Sequence record: PQ390715.1 | Strand: one strand, 5' to 3' | DNA: 64,000 nucleotides | In this document: positions 4,949 through 22,873 of the stretch, piece after piece | Numbering within the stretch: position 1 is the stretch's first letter | Layout of the letters: every line of letters starts with the position of its first letter | Position numbers and translations under genes: made by a program | Notes under the pieces: model-generated | Database searches by the model: none | What the model saw: the letters and a program-made list of their open reading frames with translations, nothing else | What the model was told of the DNA's origin: nothing

Positions 4949-5364
4949 ATAGTCCTCATTGTGCTGATTGCTTTTAATGTGTCAAACAATGCACCATATT
5001 TTACTTGCATTAGTTGATCACCAGCAGGAAGATTCATACGCATAACAGCCATGTCTTCAATCATTTCAGACGTACACAGTACTGCTACACAGGTAATAGC
5101 ATCATTCAATCCAGCTTCATTGAATTTGGCAAACGGAACTTTTCCCTGTTTGCTAAGGTTGTTATAATAAGAATTTAACTTATCATGTCCACCAGCATTT
5201 AGTACTACAATAGTTTCGTGTTCATAGTACCATTCATCAATAATAGTACTGAAAGCAGTACCTTCATATTCTTTAATTAGTTTAACACCAGCATGGAATG
5301 CTTGAATACCAGCTTGGACACCTTGGCAGTACATATTAGTTAAACAATACAATTTCATTTCCAT
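4945..5364 (-). CDS. peptidyl-tRNA hydrolase 2 (Pth2)-like protein
   Basis: GIQAFHA (compare Pth2 AQxxHA), TIVVLN, FNEAG..AITCVAV; 139 aa. Confidence 0.6.
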   Translation of the reverse strand: MEMKLYCLTNMYCQGVQAGIQAFHAGVKLIKEYEGTAFSTIIDEWYYEHETIVVLNAGGHDKLNSYYNNLSKQGKVPFAKFNEAGLNDAITCVAVLCTSEMIEDMAVMRMNLPAGDQLMQVKYGALFDTLKAISTMRTI

Positions 5365-5582
5365 ACCTCTTGTTTTTCTACGTAGCCTTTCCCATCACAG
5401 TGTGGACAAGCATAAAAGCTGCGGTAATCTTCTGACGGTACTTGTTGTGTTCCATTACATGTAGGACATACTTTACGTGCACCCGAAATAATACGTTCAT
5501 GGTGTTCAGCTTGTTTAGCTGAATCAAAAATACGACCATCTTCAGTTTGGTATTTTTCTACCATAACTTGAATTACTTTCAT
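5355..5582 (-). CDS. small DnaJ-type zinc-finger protein
   Basis: CPTCNGT and CPHCDGKG repeats. Confidence 0.7.
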   Translation of the reverse strand: MKVIQVMVEKYQTEDGRIFDSAKQAEHHERIISGARKVCPTCNGTQQVPSEDYRSFYACPHCDGKGYVEKQEVWK

Positions 5583-5592
5583 TTCTATTTCC

Positions 5593-5862
5593 TTATAAAA
5601 ATGTTAAATCTTCAGTACTTAATTGTGATAATTTACCATCATATTCAATTTCAACATATACATTTTGGTCATAAACAGCAACTACACGTTTAATAACTCC
5701 AATCTTCACGACATTCTTTTTGTAGTTGAACTCAACTGAACAACCAATAAGTTTATTTGATAGAATCTCACGTATTTGATTAGCATGGTCTTTTAGGATA
5801 GAATTAATAGATTTTTTCATAATATATCTATCATTCAAATATTTTTTAACTACATCATGCAT
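5593..5862 (-). CDS. family C small paralogue
   Basis: N-terminal helix then NKLIGCSV and a beta-rich tail. Confidence 0.65.
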   Translation of the reverse strand: MHDVVKKYLNDRYIMKKSINSILKDHANQIREILSNKLIGCSVEFNYKKNVVKIGVIKRVVAVYDQNVYVEIEYDGKLSQLSTEDLTFL

Positions 5863-5867
5863 AATTA

Positions 5868-6626
5868 TTACCTTTTGAAACGATTGAATGAGTACTCATC
5901 TTTTTCTTTACGTAAGTATCTCATTCCACCACTTTGTGGAGTAGCGAGAGTTAAGTCACCCGTCAAGAACTGACTATCAATCCAAATGCGATTACCGTAA
6001 ATTAGTGGATCTGTAACTGCTGTATGTCCACTAAAGACACAATGCACTCCATCTAACTTAGGTGCATAATATGTATTATTAGTTCTACAATAATCGAATG
6101 TTTTTCTATCCCACAAGCACTTATCAATTATATCAGCACTAAGTGATTTTGTCCCATTAACAAATCGTTCCCATGTTGTATATTCCAACGGAACTCCAGC
6201 ATGAACTAACCCAATCTTCAATCCTCGGTGATTGATTTGGATAATCATAGGGAGATCCTTTAAGTACTGACGAAAGAATTGAATGCCTGTTCCTCCAACT
6301 TCATCAAGGAATTTATCACCACCATTACTTATCCAACAATGATACCAATCTCGAAGTGTTTCCGAATCAACGCACATCATCTCATGATTACCCGCAATCA
6401 TGTAACGATTTTCTCCGAACAAAAATTCAAAAAGGAGCTTTGAATTTTGTTCTCCACGGTCGATAATATCACCTACACTGAAAACATAATCATTGTGTGT
6501 AATACCAAATTCTTTCACTGTAGCATCCCATAGTTTACCATTACCATGCAAATCACCTACAATGTATAAATCTTTATCATCAGGTACGGTTACTTCTAAG
6601 AAGTGTTTCATTATTACTCCAACCAT
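5868..6626 (-). CDS. Ser/Thr protein phosphatase (lambda NinI/PrpA-like)
   Basis: VGDLHG, VGDIIDRG, GNHE, HAG, GHT motifs; likely start MKHFLEV. Confidence 0.9.
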   Translation of the reverse strand: MVGVIMKHFLEVTVPDDKDLYIVGDLHGNGKLWDATVKEFGITHNDYVFSVGDIIDRGEQNSKLLFEFLFGENRYMIAGNHEMMCVDSETLRDWYHCWISNGGDKFLDEVGGTGIQFFRQYLKDLPMIIQINHRGLKIGLVHAGVPLEYTTWERFVNGTKSLSADIIDKCLWDRKTFDYCRTNNTYYAPKLDGVHCVFSGHTAVTDPLIYGNRIWIDSQFLTGDLTLATPQSGGMRYLRKEKDEYSFNRFKR

Positions 6627-7412: not shown

Positions 7413-8041
7413 TAATCACAACTTCCAGACGATGAACTTGAATCAGAACTAGAGCTATCATAGGAACAAGAATCAGAGGAAGAACTGCTGTGACGGCTAT
7501 AATCACTGTAATCATCATTGTTGTAGATTGGTGATGTTACGATTGCTGCTGCGGTCGCTGCCGTTGCAATTTGTGCAGTATGGTCATGAACATCTAGTTT
7601 TGGTTCATCCTTAGATTTACCTTTGTTCTTACCTTTAGTGTAACGAGCTTTCTTTGCAGTTTTAGTATTTTTCTGTACTTTAGGAGCTTTTGGTTTCACA
7701 TCTTCAACTACTGGAACTACATTCACTACAACTTTAGGATCAGTTTCTTCAAGTGTATTATACACTTTAACTTGCATTTGAACTTCAACTTCTTTAACTT
7801 CTTCTTTAACTTCTGGAATAACTGTTTCTGGTGCTGGAGTGATTTTATCAAGTTCTTTAGTAATAAAGAAGCTTGTATTTTTCTCACCTAGCATAACAAG
7901 AAGACCAATGGCAATCACTGGACTTAGTACTGTACCAAGTACTACATAACCTAGAACACTTCTGTTATAGTTATATGCAAGCATACCAGAAATAATAATA
8001 CCGATTACATATGCACTGCTAAGAATAATTGGGGTTAACAT
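7412..8041 (-). CDS. membrane-anchored protein with Lys-rich linker and Ser/Asp low-complexity tail
   Basis: Two N-terminal TM segments; tail SSSSSDSCSYDSSSSDSSSSSGSCD. Confidence 0.75.
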   Translation of the reverse strand: MLTPIILSSAYVIGIIISGMLAYNYNRSVLGYVVLGTVLSPVIAIGLLVMLGEKNTSFFITKELDKITPAPETVIPEVKEEVKEVEVQMQVKVYNTLEETDPKVVVNVVPVVEDVKPKAPKVQKNTKTAKKARYTKGKNKGKSKDEPKLDVHDHTAQIATAATAAAIVTSPIYNNDDYSDYSRHSSSSSDSCSYDSSSSDSSSSSGSCD

Positions 8042-8345
8042 ATTCTACTCCTTTGTATATAAATTTACTAACTTCTTCGATGTATAAAGACAACCCTGAA
8101 CGTTCATTTAGAACTAACCAAGCACCAAAACCACATCGAATCTCGGATATACGAAACTCTTCTACACTATAAATTGAATACGCGTTAAATGGACATATTT
8201 CATCAGATATACTTACCACATAGTTATTATTAATTGAATCTAACACCTGGGTATTGTATAAATTATTAGTACTGAAAATCTGCATTAACGAGCTAGAAAG
8301 CATCTCGGTTGTCTTTTCTAATATTGTTAAAAACGAACCATTCAC
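8019..8345 (-). CDS. hypothetical protein
   Basis: 108-aa ORF in run. Confidence 0.6.
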   Translation of the reverse strand: MNGSFLTILEKTTEMLSSSLMQIFSTNNLYNTQVLDSINNNYVVSISDEICPFNAYSIYSVEEFRISEIRCGFGAWLVLNERSGLSLYIEEVSKFIYKGVEYVNPNYS

Positions 8346-8402
8346 TTCAACTTCTCCCTATTGGTGATGTAATCAAATTATATCACCGAATTCTGATACG
8401 TC

Positions 8403-8708
8403 TCATGATATTCGCATTTCATCTATATATAATGAACATGATTCAGAATTATCGTCTAAACTTAAACCTAAATCGACCATCAAACCGCAATGCGTTCCCC
8501 AGAATTTCTTTATGTATAGTTTTTTGCTACTATTACCTAAATCATAAACATATTCATTTTTAAATATACTTTTTAATTCTTCACATATACATTTTATTAT
8601 CTTCATTACTTGATTATGATATTCGTATGGTATTCCATCAAGTTCGTTAATTATTAATGCAAAACCATTATCATAGTACTTAAGTTTATTGAATGTTTGT
8701 ATATCCAT
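8403..8708 (-). CDS. hypothetical protein (family C-like)
   Basis: 101-aa ORF abutting neighbours. Confidence 0.6.
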   Translation of the reverse strand: MDIQTFNKLKYYDNGFALIINELDGIPYEYHNQVMKIIKCICEELKSIFKNEYVYDLGNSSKKLYIKKFWGTHCGLMVDLGLSLDDNSESCSLYIDEMRIS

Positions 8709-9005
8709 TTAATATATAATCTCACTAGCTTCTATTGTGTAGACACCATCATCAGTCATTAATCTTACTGCAACTTTAATATTACTAGACATTCGTGTAA
8801 CTATCAATCCAATAATTATACCATTCTTTAAAGTACCATTATGGTATCTAACTTTTACTTCAGTTTTATTATCAATTAAGTATCTTCTAATTATGTGTAT
8901 TTCATTTCTGAATAATTCTAAAAAAGCTTCACTATTTTCTTTATCTGACCCGTCTGAACACCAGTACAATAAATTTACTTGTTCAAATAATTTTTTTATA
9001 TTCAT
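8709..9005 (-). CDS. family C-like small paralogue
   Basis: Helical N-half, beta tail KVRYHNGTLKNGIIIG. Confidence 0.6.
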   Translation of the reverse strand: MNIKKLFEQVNLLYWCSDGSDKENSEAFLELFRNEIHIIRRYLIDNKTEVKVRYHNGTLKNGIIIGLIVTRMSSNIKVAVRLMTDDGVYTIEASEIIY

Positions 9006-9361
9006 AAAAATCTCACAGATTTAATATTACTGGTTACATGATTTACCCAAGTGTTATCGAACTTGTAAACAATTGTATTAAGTGATTTATGAAAATTAAC
9101 CTCGCACACTAAAGCCTTGGAACCATTGATTGTACAGACCGTGGATGGTAAGTTGTTTGCTAATATCTCTTTTTCATCTAAACATAGTGAACTAATACAA
9201 TCATAATAGAGAGGTTCAAGAACTTTTTCAGTACTGAGAAAGTCAAAAGAAAGATCATCTATTAGTTTTATGTAATCGAATAAATTATGATAATATTCAT
9301 TCATTGTAGATCCTTTTAAATTTAGCATTATTAGAATATGTATATGAATGACCAAAATCAT
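9002..9361 (-). CDS. hypothetical protein (likely start MNEYY)
   Basis: ATGA overlap with neighbours. Confidence 0.6.
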   Translation of the reverse strand: MILVIHIHILIMLNLKGSTMNEYYHNLFDYIKLIDDLSFDFLSTEKVLEPLYYDCISSLCLDEKEILANNLPSTVCTINGSKALVCEVNFHKSLNTIVYKFDNTWVNHVTSNIKSVRFL

Positions 9362-10969: not shown

Positions 10970-11299
10970 TTAATCCTCTAAAAATTTAACATGCTCTATA
11001 TTATGATAGGTGAGCCATTCCTGTGGTGTTCCCTTTCGTATTAAAACACCAATATACGCAATACCATTAATTAGACCATTACTATCAGTATTCACATCAA
11101 CTTTCACAATCTCGGAATCGTACCAGTGTTTAAATGTGTAATCCCAACATCTGACTTTCTTCCCAATAAGATTGCTCTTGTATTTGTCAATCATTTCATC
11201 GACGATAGTTTGTACTGAATTTTTAATTTCAGCTTCTACTGACTTTATATATAGTAAATTACTTTGTGCATTGTTTATCATTATATTTCCCAACTCCAA
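10970..11299 (-). CDS. family C small paralogue
   Basis: SNLIGKKVRCW. Confidence 0.7.
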   Translation of the reverse strand: MELGNIMINNAQSNLLYIKSVEAEIKNSVQTIVDEMIDKYKSNLIGKKVRCWDYTFKHWYDSEIVKVDVNTDSNGLINGIAYIGVLIRKGTPQEWLTYHNIEHVKFLED

Positions 11300-11495
11300 A
11301 TCGCTTGGAGATTTTCACAAGTACAGATTCATCACAACGAATACTAGCAGTATCATTGGATGAACTGTACTTTAATGGGGTCCACTGTAATTGAGATTCT
11401 TCTAGGAACTTGATACATCTGAAATAATCTTTCAAGGAAAGAAATTTAACTACTGACATATCCTGAACAATACTATGCTGAACTTCAACTTTCAT
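11259..11495 (-). CDS. hypothetical protein
   Basis: GGAG SD before ATG at 11495. Confidence 0.65.
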   Translation of the reverse strand: MKVEVQHSIVQDMSVVKFLSLKDYFRCIKFLEESQLQWTPLKYSSSNDTASIRCDESVLVKISKRFGVGKYNDKQCTK

Positions 11496-12932: not shown

Positions 12933-13237
12933 TTTATTACCTCTATATCTACATCAGTTCCATAATATGATATTAATCCATCATCAGATTCACACTGAAT
13001 AGACAACTCAGATTCATAGTATGTTACTTTATTCACTGTTAGTACTTGTTCTTCAATTACTCCAGAAAAATAATTCATCTCACGTACACGAACTTTAGTT
13101 CCTTTAGGTAGTTCATCTGAGATTTTTCGAACAAGATCATAAGCAGCCTGTTCAAGTGTGTACAGTAATTGTAATCTATCTTGAATATTCATATTATTTC
13201 CACCAACTGGTATCACGTCCATTAGACAAAGATTCAT
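12929..13237 (-). CDS. family C small paralogue
   Basis: DELPKGTKVRV; likely start MNIQDRL. Confidence 0.65.
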   Translation of the reverse strand: MNLCLMDVIPVGGNNMNIQDRLQLLYTLEQAAYDLVRKISDELPKGTKVRVREMNYFSGVIEEQVLTVNKVTYYESELSIQCESDDGLISYYGTDVDIEVIK

Positions 13238-13883
13238 TGTACTGATGCCTAAAATTAGTTTTTGGATTATTGTTCATAGTACTAATAAAATCAAATTTAA
13301 CATTCTCTTGAATATATTTTTTAACACTATCTTTAAATTTAATAGTACTGAAGTCTAAATCTAGATGTTCATACAATACCGGATGACAAAACTCATGTGT
13401 ACGCAACGCTGGCATGGTATCCTTAATGTATTGCACAGTGTTAATCATTGCATTGTATTCAGGCATAGCACGCATCATCATTAGCTGAAAGTGTTCTTCC
13501 TCTGACATTGACTCATCCAAATCAATAACGACTTCATCATTTTTAGAGTCATAAACTTTAATGGTACTCTTGGTTGGATCAAGCATAGCCCACTCTGGAT
13601 ACAGGCATGTTTTCCAAAAAGGATTATTGCACTGAAACATACTAATGAGATTTTGATCTTTATCAAAAATAGCAAATCCAAGATCCGAACTTGGTTGTAC
13701 TTCACATACACAAATATCGTAAGACGAGTCTTCAGTACTGAGTGAACCAACTACATTTGATATATGTGAATATGGAGTTTCTCTTGACTCCAACTGAAAT
13801 GTACTTTCAATTCGATTGATTTGTGGATGTAATGTAATTACACCCCTTAGTACATATAAAATTCTATCTAAATCTTTAATCAA
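13194..13883 (-). CDS. hypothetical protein with family A-like motif
   Basis: SEEEHFQLMMM. Confidence 0.7.
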   Translation of the reverse strand: MIKDLDRILYVLRGVITLHPQINRIESTFQLESRETPYSHISNVVGSLSTEDSSYDICVCEVQPSSDLGFAIFDKDQNLISMFQCNNPFWKTCLYPEWAMLDPTKSTIKVYDSKNDEVVIDLDESMSEEEHFQLMMMRAMPEYNAMINTVQYIKDTMPALRTHEFCHPVLYEHLDLDFSTIKFKDSVKKYIQENVKFDFISTMNNNPKTNFRHQYNESLSNGRDTSWWK

Positions 13884-20760: not shown

Positions 20761-21306
20761 TTAGAGACAGTTGTGTACTATCTTATCAAAAGTACTACTG
20801 TCAATGTTATATTCATATAAAAATTTAAAATGTGAACCGTAACGCATCATCAGATTAAACTCTTCTTCAGTATTGAACTTGTAATCGTGAATAGTCTCAG
20901 GGGTACATTTTAAACCTAAGAACTCTATAATTTCAGATGTTACATCATATCCTGAATTGAAGTATTTAACCCAAACACATTTTCCTTGTGGGTTGTATTT
21001 TCTATATTCTCCTTCTAGTTCTCCTTTAATAATATGAGCCTTAACACTTATTGAATTATTACTATATCTTTCTTCAAAATAATTACCATACTGGGCTTTT
21101 GATATTGTTGGTTTTTGAGTAGGAAGTAATTTAACTGAAGTTACTTCAATACCATTTTGCAATTCCTTTATATAAGAAATGCATCCTTTTTCTTTAATAA
21201 CCACATATCCAGTAAAGATATCTTCGTCTTGTGATTGATTAATACAATCATCAAAATTCAAAGTTTTATAAGTAACAGTTTTTTCTTTTCTAATAAATGC
21301 CATCAT
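20761..21306 (-). CDS. MORN-like repeat protein with C-terminal EEEFNLMMRYG motif
   Basis: GELEGEYRKYNPQG..VWVKYFNSG; start moved to MMAFIRK (AGGA SD) because the upstream track extension lies in two hairpins. Confidence 0.7.
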   Translation of the reverse strand: MMAFIRKEKTVTYKTLNFDDCINQSQDEDIFTGYVVIKEKGCISYIKELQNGIEVTSVKLLPTQKPTISKAQYGNYFEERYSNNSISVKAHIIKGELEGEYRKYNPQGKCVWVKYFNSGYDVTSEIIEFLGLKCTPETIHDYKFNTEEEFNLMMRYGSHFKFLYEYNIDSSTFDKIVHNCL

Positions 21307-21336
21307 TATTCCTATGGAAACATCAATGAATATACG

Positions 21337-21920
21337 TGACGTTGATTTCATCAACATCAGTAGAATTACCATGCTACGCATGTCTAATTCTACAAGTACT
21401 ATTTTCTTTTAATTAATATTGACGGGGTTTGCTTGAGCATATTTCATCCCCCCGCAGGGGAAAGAACAAAAAAGTTTGACGCTGGTGGCCTTCACATAGT
21501 TCATATCACGAATTCTCTTACGAGACGAAAGCGGGTTGCTCTGTTTCTCTCTATCGCGGTTCTTGTAGCAACGGTCGTCGGTCTTAAACATCCCGACACA
21601 TAATACAAATACCATATGACCAGTACTTGTATTTGATTTCACAAAATTTGGACGCAACTATATTGTATAATTCCGACCGCATATTTCTTATGAAATCTCC
21701 CTTAGATAATTGGTAAGGTGCGATCCTTATATGTCTATCGAGGAACTCTCTTTATCCTATTGGAGTTCTTTATACAGCCGCATTGCCGTGAGTGGTTCAA
21801 ACTATGCCATCATCTAACGGGTTTCATCTGCTGTTCGTACTGAAAGGACTACTCATCTACCCTCTACATTTTCGAGTGGATTAGGCTTTTAATCATTTCC
21901 TTATGGGAACCTTTCAGGAT
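21337..21920 (-). ncRNA. candidate large structured non-coding RNA (about 585 nt)
   Basis: Largest gene-free stretch; locally GC-richer; at least 10 hairpins, with G-U pairs and a GTAA tetraloop favouring the minus strand. Confidence 0.5.
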
Positions 21921-21922
21921 TA

Positions 21923-21958
21923 AAAAAAAGGTGACTAACATATTATGTTGTCACCTTA
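21923..21958 (-). terminator. Rho-independent terminator
   Basis: Minus strand AAGGTGACAACATAATATGTTAGTCACCTTTTTTTT. Confidence 0.8.
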
Positions 21959-21985
21959 TATTATATCATTAACTTATCATTTGTC

Positions 21986-22873
21986 TCAGTTATATTCGGT
22001 TTTTTCTGTGAAATTTGTTAGTATATCAACACTAAAACTTCGAATAACCTCAATCTTGCTTGGCATGAAACGGTGTTTATTTTTAATATACAACTCATCA
22101 TCTTCAATAAAAGATGTAAAAATGAATGCCATATCTTCACGTGGAATTTGTAAAATATCACACATTTCATTTGCCGATGCTACTGGTGAATCATTATAGT
22201 ACTGAGAGTATGCACTAGATTGGCGACCGATTATAATAGAATTTCTGATTAGAAAATTACTACAGTACTGAAAATCTTTGTAGTACTTTTCAATAATGTA
22301 CGGCATAAGTGCTTCTTTCACGTCTTCATACCCATTAGTACTATCAATTGCTATACAGTAATCTTCACGTTCTTTTTTCTCATGATGGTAATCATAAACA
22401 TACTCAAAGAATAAATTTTCATTTAATGAATCATTTAAACCAACTGATCCACTATAGTATGATTTTCTATCATTCATTCGATCATCTGGGCATGATGCAT
22501 ACATAGAAGTGTCATGTGATGATGTACCAATATAAATTTTCTTAGTAATATGATTATATGCTATGTAATCATAATCTTGAACTCCAGTTAGCATTAACTG
22601 GAACATTAAATCATCAGGAACATCAATTAACGGGTACTCAAACTTCGAATATCTACTGCGGCAGAAGTTCTTTTCAAATGCTCGGTATGTGATAAAATCT
22701 TTTAGATTTTTACAAGATTCATGTTCATGAGCATTACTGATACGTACATTGACATTAGTCGATGTGCAATATCCATCCGAATCTTCGGTGAAGTTACCAG
22801 CATAATCCTTATTGTAGTCAACGATTAGATAAAGTTTCATACATCTCCAGACAAAAAAAGGACGAGATAACAA
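21986..22873 (-). CDS. hypothetical protein with family A-like motif (likely start MKLYLIV)
   Basis: VPDDLMFQLMLTG. Confidence 0.75.
   Translation of the reverse strand: MLSRPFFVWRCMKLYLIVDYNKDYAGNFTEDSDGYCTSTNVNVRISNAHEHESCKNLKDFITYRAFEKNFCRSRYSKFEYPLIDVPDDLMFQLMLTGVQDYDYIAYNHITKKIYIGTSSHDTSMYASCPDDRMNDRKSYYSGSVGLNDSLNENLFFEYVYDYHHEKKEREDYCIAIDSTNGYEDVKEALMPYIIEKYYKDFQYCSNFLIRNSIIIGRQSSAYSQYYNDSPVASANEMCDILQIPREDMAFIFTSFIEDDELYIKNKHRFMPSKIEVIRSFSVDILTNFTEKTEYN

Follow-up and report, generated by a model that had tools for sequence, protein, structure and literature searches.

A family of large pseudoknotted RNAs in RaK2-like jumbo phages, also carried by enterobacterial chromosomal islands

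What does a jumbo phage keep in a stretch of roughly 0.6 kb that encodes no credible protein? The question arises at positions 21337-21920 of the window analyzed here, which is nt 1-64000 of the 348 kb genome of Escherichia phage SHEFM2K (PQ390715.1), a RaK2-like jumbo phage of the 121Q/PBECO4 type (Asteriusvirus). The stretch lies between two minus-strand genes, M2K_0054 (21986-22840, with its TGA stop codon at 21986-21988) and M2K_0049 (20761-21303, starting at 21303), and an earlier note on this DNA had proposed that it is gene-free and specifies a large structured RNA from the minus strand. Our analysis bears out both proposals. Covariation, at least three pseudoknots, an apparent promoter of its own and the lack of coding capacity lend good support to the element being one copy, here called copy A, of a family of RNA genes of ~0.5-0.65 kb that RaK2-like jumbo phages carry as four to five diverged copies per genome, and it is near certain that this is a new family of structured RNAs. 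Going beyond what had been foreseen, the element is multi-copy (four per genome), extends to a putative promoter at 21960-21988 and is common to chromosomal islands.

With respect to copy number, nhmmer and covariance-model searches of the whole SHEFM2K genome recover exactly four copies, all on the minus strand. No repeat copy lies within the 64-kb window, and the remaining copies are elsewhere in the genome (coordinates of PQ390715.1):

21,415-21,921, minus strand: copy A, the element under study
125,908-126,389, minus strand: copy B
236,311-236,806, minus strand: copy C
315,033-315,584, minus strand: copy D

Outside this genome, blastn matched 62-71 phage records at 4-5 places each, and none of the records inspected carries an RNA annotation at the element. 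Pattern scans of IMG/VR together with nhmmer yielded ~60 distinct full-length copies, which come from 121Q, GAP32, CBB, BF, fHe-Yen9-04 and uncultured contigs of ~350 kb, again at 4-5 per genome; their pairwise identity has a mean of 68% and a minimum of 54%. A maximum-likelihood tree resolves about five paralogue clades with one copy per genome in each, which indicates that the duplication is old, and the paralogues occupy conserved, syntenic positions without homogenization. Klebsiella phage K64-1 (Alcyoneusvirus) carries a more diverged copy, which scores 95.6 bits with the covariance model and shares its gene context, upstream of a DNA methyltransferase gene, with copy A. In practical terms, 4-5 loci per genome in ~70 phage records should be marked as non-coding RNA genes, not as hypothetical open reading frames (ORFs). 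Copy B lies directly downstream of the phage RNA polymerase sigma-factor gene M2K_0334, whose terminator abuts the RNA promoter (13429-13452 and from 13458 on in the copy B sequence segment).

The case for a conserved fold rests on these homologues. A curated pair model was scored in a MAFFT alignment of 59 copies, where 87% of its 108 pairs are canonical, against the 38-44% obtained by sliding the 3′ partners 1-3 columns. For the 86 well-aligned pairs the value is 92.6%, against 73.3 ± 0.4% (maximum 74.5%) in 300 partner shuffles, and two-sided changes are found in 64 of them. RNAalifold, given a 55-sequence alignment, predicted 49 pairs, 30 of them compensatory. For the 3′ subdomain, a covariance model was used to realign 65 matches and 28 pairs were counted: 98.7% are standard pairs (68.2 ± 0.8% after shuffling, with 0 of 500 shuffles reaching the observed value, and 38-49% after sliding), the covariation score is 0.848 (0.250 shuffled, again 0 of 500, and 0.06-0.12 slid), and 24 of the 28 pairs have changed on both sides. 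The variable hairpins are imperfectly aligned, which leaves pseudoknot PK1 and helix P9 less certain. The covariation that the earlier note had looked to as a check is thus present, whereas the folding energy of the single sequence, which it had expected to beat shuffled controls, does so only mildly (z = −2.18 for the minus strand and −1.64 for the plus strand). Such folding is weak evidence and does not prove a structure; proof comes from the homologues. The G-U pairs of P14 and P17, together with the promoter, place the RNA on the minus strand, in agreement with the remark that G-U wobbles work on that strand only. Taken together, these comparisons give good support to selection acting on an RNA, rather than on a protein or a DNA duplex.

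In terms of the fold itself, the alignments support well a transcript predicted to adopt a compact, multi-pseudoknotted core with many invariant unpaired nucleotides. The features of copy A are as follows, from 5′ to 3′ along the RNA:

21982-21988, minus strand: −35-like box TGAGACA, found by promoter scan; overlaps the M2K_0054 stop codon (21986-21988)
21960-21968, minus strand: extended −10 box TGATATAAT, with TATAAT at 21960-21965 preceded by TG
21922-21955, minus strand: terminator-like hairpin GGTGAC...GTCACC (stem 21930-21955) and T8 run (21922-21929), read from the sequence
21837-21921, minus strand: 5′ domain, from covariation
21910-21917 with 21840-21847, minus strand: P1 of the 5′ domain, from covariation
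Within the 5′ domain, minus strand: P2 hairpin, P3 hairpin with the conserved loop GAAAAYGUA, and conserved GAUGAG
Within the 5′ domain, minus strand: 3-bp G-x-A/U-x′-C helix bracketing the P1 3′ strand (x/x′ UA in 30, AU in 18 and CG in 11; 100% paired)
21705-21834, minus strand: central domain with P4, P5, P7, P8 and PK1 (P4, P5 and P7 98-100% paired, with 2-5 pair types)
21830-21834 with 21774-21778, minus strand: P4
21763-21768 with 21743-21748, minus strand: P7 hairpin
21752-21756 (P7 loop) with 21705-21709, minus strand: PK1, just 5′ of the invariant UAAGGGAG
21635-21697, minus strand: P9 helix and inserted peripheral module, with stem AAUU/AAUU and loop UACAAUAUAGUUGCGUCC at 21650-21667
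21501-21633, minus strand: 3′ pseudoknot domain with P10, P11, P12, P13, P14, the P15 GNRA hairpin and PK2, from the covariance model
21568-21572 with 21535-21539, minus strand: P12, crossing P13 and P14
21614-21619 (P10 loop) with 21501-21506, minus strand: PK2
21420-21500, minus strand: P16 region (CAGCGUCA), U-rich linker, P17 and 3′ tail, from conserved blocks
21447-21463, minus strand: P17 hairpin UUUCCCC-UGC-GGGGGGA, varying only by C-G to U-G
21420-21430, minus strand: conserved 3′ tail AAACCCCGUCA
21360-21393, minus strand: H1, a 3′ extension hairpin with a GAAUU...AAUUC frame
21337-21359, minus strand: H2, a 3′ extension hairpin

Helix P12 (GUUGC/GCAAC) crosses both P13 and P14, and all three are 100% paired while displaying 2-5 pair types. 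Pseudoknot PK2 joins the apical loop of P10 to the strand just 3′ of P13. A column-based haplotype test, used in place of one on 110-nt windows that had been uninformative, revealed 14 haplotypes and at least 9 distinct, perfectly complementary 7-mers, such as AUUGUAU/AUACAAU, UUCAUGU/ACAUGAA and GUCGAAU/AUUCGAC, and this 7-bp pairing differs among the four paralogues of one genome. PK1, which would pair the P7 loop with nucleotides just 5′ of UAAGGGAG, has moderate support, its cognate runs averaging 4.0 nt versus 3.0 nt for non-cognate combinations. In all, the alignments support at least three pseudoknots. The paired elements are accompanied by invariant or near-invariant unpaired blocks (GAUGAG, the GAAAAYGUA loop, CACGGCAAUGCGGC, UAUAAAG, GAUAGACAUAU, UAAGGGAG, GACCGU, GAAAC..ACCCGC and CGUCA), a pattern typical of compact tertiary folds.

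The hairpins originally picked out by eye fared well for the greater part. H2 (21337-21359), H1 (21360-21393), P17 (CCCC-TGC-GGGG), P15 (TCTC-GTAA-GAGA), P12 (TTGCT/AGCAA), P11 (GTCGG/CCGAC), P10 (CAAATAC/GTATTTG), P8 (CCTTA/TAAGG) and P7 (GAACTC/GAGTTC) all covary, but AATTATA-CAA-TATAGTT and ATTTC-ATAA-GAAAT are specific to this copy and not conserved. The small multi-way junction suggested near 21890-21920 corresponds to the 5′ junction P1-P3, near 21840-21917, and likewise shows covariation. Homologues of H1 and H2 with compensatory changes trail the core in the inspected phage and island copies, so that the unit spans roughly 21337-21921; in some copies a gene begins right after H2. The peripheral module (stem AAUUUU/AAAAUU, loop UACAAnAnAG.U.CGUC) is inserted at P9 in some copies, at P15 in others and at both in copy D, and P9 is a plain hairpin in some. 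Found in different helices of different paralogues, the module behaves like a movable structural cassette (11170-11340 in the copy D sequence segment).

Protein-coding signals are lacking throughout. No credible ORF is found between the M2K_0054 stop and the M2K_0049 start; each sense frame has at least five stop codons in all 59 homologues, whose variability shows no 3-nt periodicity (0.266, 0.246 and 0.246). An apparent Shine-Dalgarno-AUG pair at GGGGGGAUGA was considered as the start of a small peptide and rejected, since neither frame nor start codon is conserved. The GC content of the element is 0.38-0.445, versus ~0.30 in the flanks. With covariation above controls, no coding signal and a putative promoter of its own, the locus has the general properties of a structured non-coding RNA gene. 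Its GenBank annotation consists of four opposite-strand PHANOTATE ORFs marked 'No_PHROG'; these, M2K_0050 to M2K_0053 (30-56 aa, no PHROG match; 21314-21884, plus strand), overlie the RNA on the wrong strand, and copies B, C and D are covered by filler ORFs of the same kind. A mechanical ORF list starts M2K_0049 at an ATG at 21381, within hairpin H1 (interval 21301-21381). We favor the shorter start at 21303, as H1 and H2 are kept as RNA and an AGGA box precedes 21303.

Transcription of the unit would begin at a promoter shared by the whole family. All copies are preceded by the consensus TG(A/G)AAC(A/G)-N15-17-TGnTATAAT; the −35-like TG(A/G)AAC(A/G) box recurs, equally spaced, in ~60 copies from phages and islands, and TATAAT, invariant in a first 17-copy alignment, is TATACT in some island-type copies of the ~63-copy set. 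The boxes at 21960-21988 are accordingly read as a putative promoter. They match the TGAAACG/TATAAT class of phages CBB and GAP32, where 'divergent RpoD-like' promoters, with TGAAACG and a −10 box, lie upstream of DNA-synthesis genes (PMC5259590). The strong terminator reported at the upstream edge of the element does exist as a hairpin with a T8 run, but it is not simply upstream: it sits between the −10 box and the RNA core, in A-type copies only, and is absent there in the other paralogues. Were transcription to start ~7 nt past the −10 box, its first nucleotide would lie within the 5′ arm of the hairpin, and transcripts from this promoter would then lack the full stem. Plus-strand genes flank copy C, which is oriented antisense to them and continues for ~190 nt beyond the core, up to a bidirectional terminator. 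The orthologous copies of GAP32, CBB, BF and Yen9-04 have the same arrangement and terminator end, from which it follows that the family includes free-standing RNA genes. In one paralogue clade, the gene right after H2 (~150 nt past the RNA) begins MSNNLDRSIGALVGLAVGDALG and looks like an ADP-ribosylglycohydrolase.

Is this an RNA that has been seen before? A cmscan of the whole window with Rfam 15 at gathering thresholds gave no matches; at E ≤ 10, the interval 21200-22100 returned only chance small RNA and small nucleolar RNA matches at the terminator, and ten other copies gave nothing inside the RNA at E ≤ 1. ARAGORN found no tRNA or transfer-messenger RNA (tmRNA) genes in 21000-22300. The impression, gained from sequence alone, that diagnostic motifs of ROOL, OLE, GOLLD, tmRNA, RNase P and group I introns are missing is therefore upheld by the Rfam scans. 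Specifically, ROOL, GOLLD, OLE, raiA and HEARO were rejected for want of a covariance-model match; group I and group II introns for want of a match to RF00028 or RF00029, the element moreover lying between complete genes with its own promoter; and RNase P RNA, tmRNA and tRNA-like RNAs for want of a match in Rfam or by ARAGORN. PA5oct ncRNA002, a long non-coding RNA abundant in RNA-seq of a distant relative, has no homology to the element by eye, nhmmer or covariance model. We found no paper describing the element in the searchable literature.

The closest resemblances are thus of kind. Like ROOL and GOLLD (RF03087, RF01998), the element is 0.5-0.8 kb in size, has many helices and pseudoknots, is phage-associated and belongs to the RNAs without an assigned function; a preprint describes the covarying loop pairings of ROOL and GOLLD as intermolecular contacts in homo-oligomeric cages (bioRxiv 10.1101/2024.12.08.627333). 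Unlike those RNAs of Lactobacillales and the rumen, with which it has no sequence or structure match, the element occurs in Enterobacterales jumbo phages as 4-5 diverged copies per genome, away from tRNA genes, and forms part of an island core as well. Phage phi29 pRNA is also a phage-encoded structured RNA; it works with the late DNA machinery and multimerizes by covarying loop-loop pairing, and the element has the covarying PK2. The pRNA is, however, ~174 nt long, single-copy and from another phage group. Conserved tertiary folds are a rarity among large RNAs, and every such class has led towards new biochemistry. The present one is unusual in having ancient paralogues within each genome, at least three covariation-supported pseudoknots and a place in both virulent jumbo phages and defense islands.

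The islands came to light through RNA homologues in bacterial chromosomes. Among 5,426 complete E. coli genomes, two contain a homologue, at 74% identity; no match was found on plasmids. The homologue of E. coli LR-29-1 is part of an island of ~10 kb adjoining ffs that encodes a tyrosine integrase split by IS3, hypothetical genes, a DuOB/DUF488/mSLOG-DUF4326 trio (PADLOC candidate PDC-M45A) and a resolvase, and the RNA is complete, with the same promoter type as the phage copies. A Buttiauxella contig has, in order, an integrase, the RNA, a cI-like S24 repressor, an HTH_35 protein, a membrane-like protein of 286 aa (hyp286), an LprI-type lysozyme inhibitor and a resolvase. The hyp286 family comprises 56 clusters from Enterobacter, Klebsiella and relatives, and in six of six hyp286 contexts (four with one island type in common, one from Atlantibacter and one from an unclassified Enterobacteriaceae) the RNA occupies a gene-free gap and always points into the convergent repressor gene. 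All seven islands examined contain the RNA, in chromosomes of E. coli, Enterobacter, Klebsiella-type hosts, Buttiauxella and Atlantibacter. Most hits of a loose gapped pattern run on bacterial genomes and metagenomes were due to chance in GC-rich genomes, among the matches listed, and the true ones were recovered with nhmmer; the census therefore covers at least the islands named here.

These islands share a core arrangement, in which the RNA is followed by the convergent cI-like repressor, HTH_35, hyp286, LprI and resolvase genes, with cargo that varies (Kiwa KwaAB, PLDc_2, SMC_N/DUF6602 or DuOB/DUF488), as does the integrase type. Having an integrase, a repressor, defense cargo and no virion genes, they resemble satellites or phage-inducible chromosomal islands (PICIs), and no recognizable replication or packaging genes were seen in those examined. 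Island copies occupy two places in the RNA tree: that of E. coli falls within the C-type clade, next to the copies of Yen9-04 and BF, whereas those of Enterobacter and Buttiauxella group apart, together with a 349-kb metagenomic phage contig. These two separate clades imply at least two transfers between phages and islands. Two further observations concern island sequences. Some 400 nt downstream of the RNA in the E. coli island, ahead of a gene for a 257-aa membrane-like protein, is an AT-rich stretch with three ATCGATCGTT-type repeats (12940-13035 in its sequence segment) that look like iterons and could possibly be the island's own origin. In the island core, the membrane-like protein followed by the LprI-type lysozyme inhibitor (8001-9293 and 5039-6331 in two island segments) recalls the T4 Imm/Sp superinfection-exclusion pair and could, by that analogy, act against a phage tail lysozyme.

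What, then, might the RNA do? We consider it probably a point at which jumbo phages and islands interact. As to how it works, our preferred reading, to which we assign a probability of about 0.45, is a trans-acting one, in which the RNA serves as part of a ribonucleoprotein (RNP), as a ribozyme or through self-assembly; the extent of selection on tertiary structure and the free-standing C-type genes are what favor it. The RNA would be transcribed from a phage promoter of the 'middle' type, which is the class found ahead of DNA-synthesis genes, and, once folded, would act as an RNP scaffold or cofactor, or as a self-assembling or catalytic RNA, engaging the phage machinery of the replication and packaging phase. 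Defense-carrying enterobacterial islands would have captured the whole cassette at least twice, with fold and promoter kept, such that infection by the cognate phage would lead the island to make a look-alike RNA that would either exploit this machinery (hitch-hiking) or titrate it away (decoy defense). Both the action in trans and the direction in which islands use the RNA are inferences here. Several points weigh against this picture. The dispersal of several long-diverged paralogues at intervals of 54-110 kb is more what one would expect of a cis-acting site, for instance an origin; the terminator-like hairpin after the promoter may leave copy A poorly expressed from it; the promoter, with its extended −10 box, may simply be sigma-70 dependent, making the island RNA constitutive rather than infection-induced; both transcript ends are placed from the sequence; and searches of the phage loci returned no homologue of any island protein.

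The main rival, which we judge somewhat unlikely, is a cis-acting origin RNA of the T4 type. The transcript from the middle promoter would stay in place as an R-loop and prime the leading strand for the T4-like replisome, with the fold positioning or processing the primer; islands would carry a helper-type origin, to be amplified by the infecting phage and then packaged. Such priming has parallels: ColE1 RNA II must fold to prime, and Kreuzer and Alberts reportedly found in 1985 that plasmids bearing T4 origins are amplified and packaged by T4. ColE1 RNA II and the T4 oriF and oriG transcripts resemble the element in being promoter-driven, several hundred nt long and provided with a G-run that possibly aids the hybrid, and T4 adds middle-mode promoters and several origins per genome; their tertiary folds are far less conserved than that of the element. 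The distribution of the copies suits an origin, with spacings of 104, 110, 79 and 54 kb in SHEFM2K (P = 0.053 for so large a minimum gap under random placement) and syntenic paralogues that have not been homogenized, as do the promoter class found before DNA-synthesis genes, the T4-like replisome, RNase H and endonuclease VII that SHEFM2K encodes, and the retention of the cassette by islands without recognizable replication or packaging genes. A conserved G6 run and an AT-rich spacer follow the core, although AT-richness says little in a genome of ~30-35% GC. Against this, three pseudoknots and invariant junction nucleotides go far beyond the requirements of known primer RNAs, RNA-structure selection extends over the entire unit, H1 and H2 included, the copies have no DNA-only element (iterons or a conserved unwinding element) in common, the U-rich linker before P17 disfavors an R-loop, and the G-run is sequestered in a hairpin.

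The remaining explanations fare less well. A cis-regulatory leader, whether a put-like antiterminator or a riboswitch or attenuator of very large size that uses the internal hairpin and U-run, would control read-through into downstream genes or the island cI gene; it is improbable in our view. Copies A, B and D and several other clades do directly precede co-oriented genes, whose Shine-Dalgarno sequence is sometimes held in the H2 loop; 25 of 63 copies have a terminator-like hairpin and U-run before P17; and the island RNA points into a repressor gene. The downstream genes are nonetheless unrelated between copies, the gene-preceding copies A and B are those without the internal terminator, and size and complexity far exceed those of known leaders. 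Copy C and its orthologues have no co-oriented gene downstream and end, opposite a convergent gene, at a terminator of their own, on which ground a riboswitch or attenuator leader was rejected as a class assignment. Still less probable is a DNA signal for terminase or another packaging factor, which islands would copy as P4 and cos-type PICIs copy cos. Satellites that copy helper packaging sites are a known precedent, and the element is common to phages and islands; the selective packaging of jumbo-phage satellites also awaits an explanation (PMC12595487). Yet 4-5 dispersed copies per genome are unlike pac or cos, relatives have defined terminal repeats (PMC5259590), and strand-specific RNA covariation with G-U pairs speaks against a site read as duplex DNA. 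A last possibility, that the hairpins arose by chance in a decayed gene or in a repeated DNA fragment, could be entertained on the single-sequence z of only −2.2, but covariation, conservation, promoter and distribution all contradict this, and we give it next to no weight.

The link to the islands can be cast in a sharper form, in which the RNA is the specific handle of a helper-satellite relationship. Phages would need it, as an origin/primer RNA or as a self-assembling RNP component, its PK2 'address' would differ between paralogues, and a widespread family of islands would carry a copy either to be replicated and packaged by these phages or to block them; we regard this as possible but doubtful. 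In 2025, defense islands without transfer genes were shown to be transduced as satellites by a Pseudomonas jumbo phage, with the recognition mechanism unexplained (PMC12595487; commentary PMC12772148). The element, which the I55 satellite paper does not mention (PMC12595487), is a concrete candidate handle in enterobacteria for that question, stated as open in the same year. The islands here resemble those with P4 or cos-PICI cos sites and I55 in being small and integrative, with an integrase, a repressor, defense cargo, no structural genes and one non-coding element common with virulent phages; they differ in that this element is a structured RNA gene with its own promoter. If the idea is right, a jumbo phage and chromosomal islands would for the first time be seen to be linked by an RNA-based recognition element, and in a bench-tractable E. 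coli system: the close relative Sharanji is recorded with host K-12 MG1655, which makes the element testable in laboratory E. coli.

Three other regions of the SHEFM2K genome deserve mention. A gene-free stretch of ~590 nt beside tRNA-Thr, at the edge of the tRNA cluster (138.78-139.38 kb), was considered as a further copy and is not homologous to the element. At ~78.85-80.38 kb of PQ390715.1, ~1.5 kb of gene-poor DNA with only tiny opposite-strand filler ORFs gives no match to the RNA model and may hold a different non-coding feature. The adjoining ~80.4-99.9 kb consists of long tandem paralogue arrays, with ~25 small phrog_11711-like genes followed by ~14 annotated as 'regulator of chromosome condensation' (RCC1-like).

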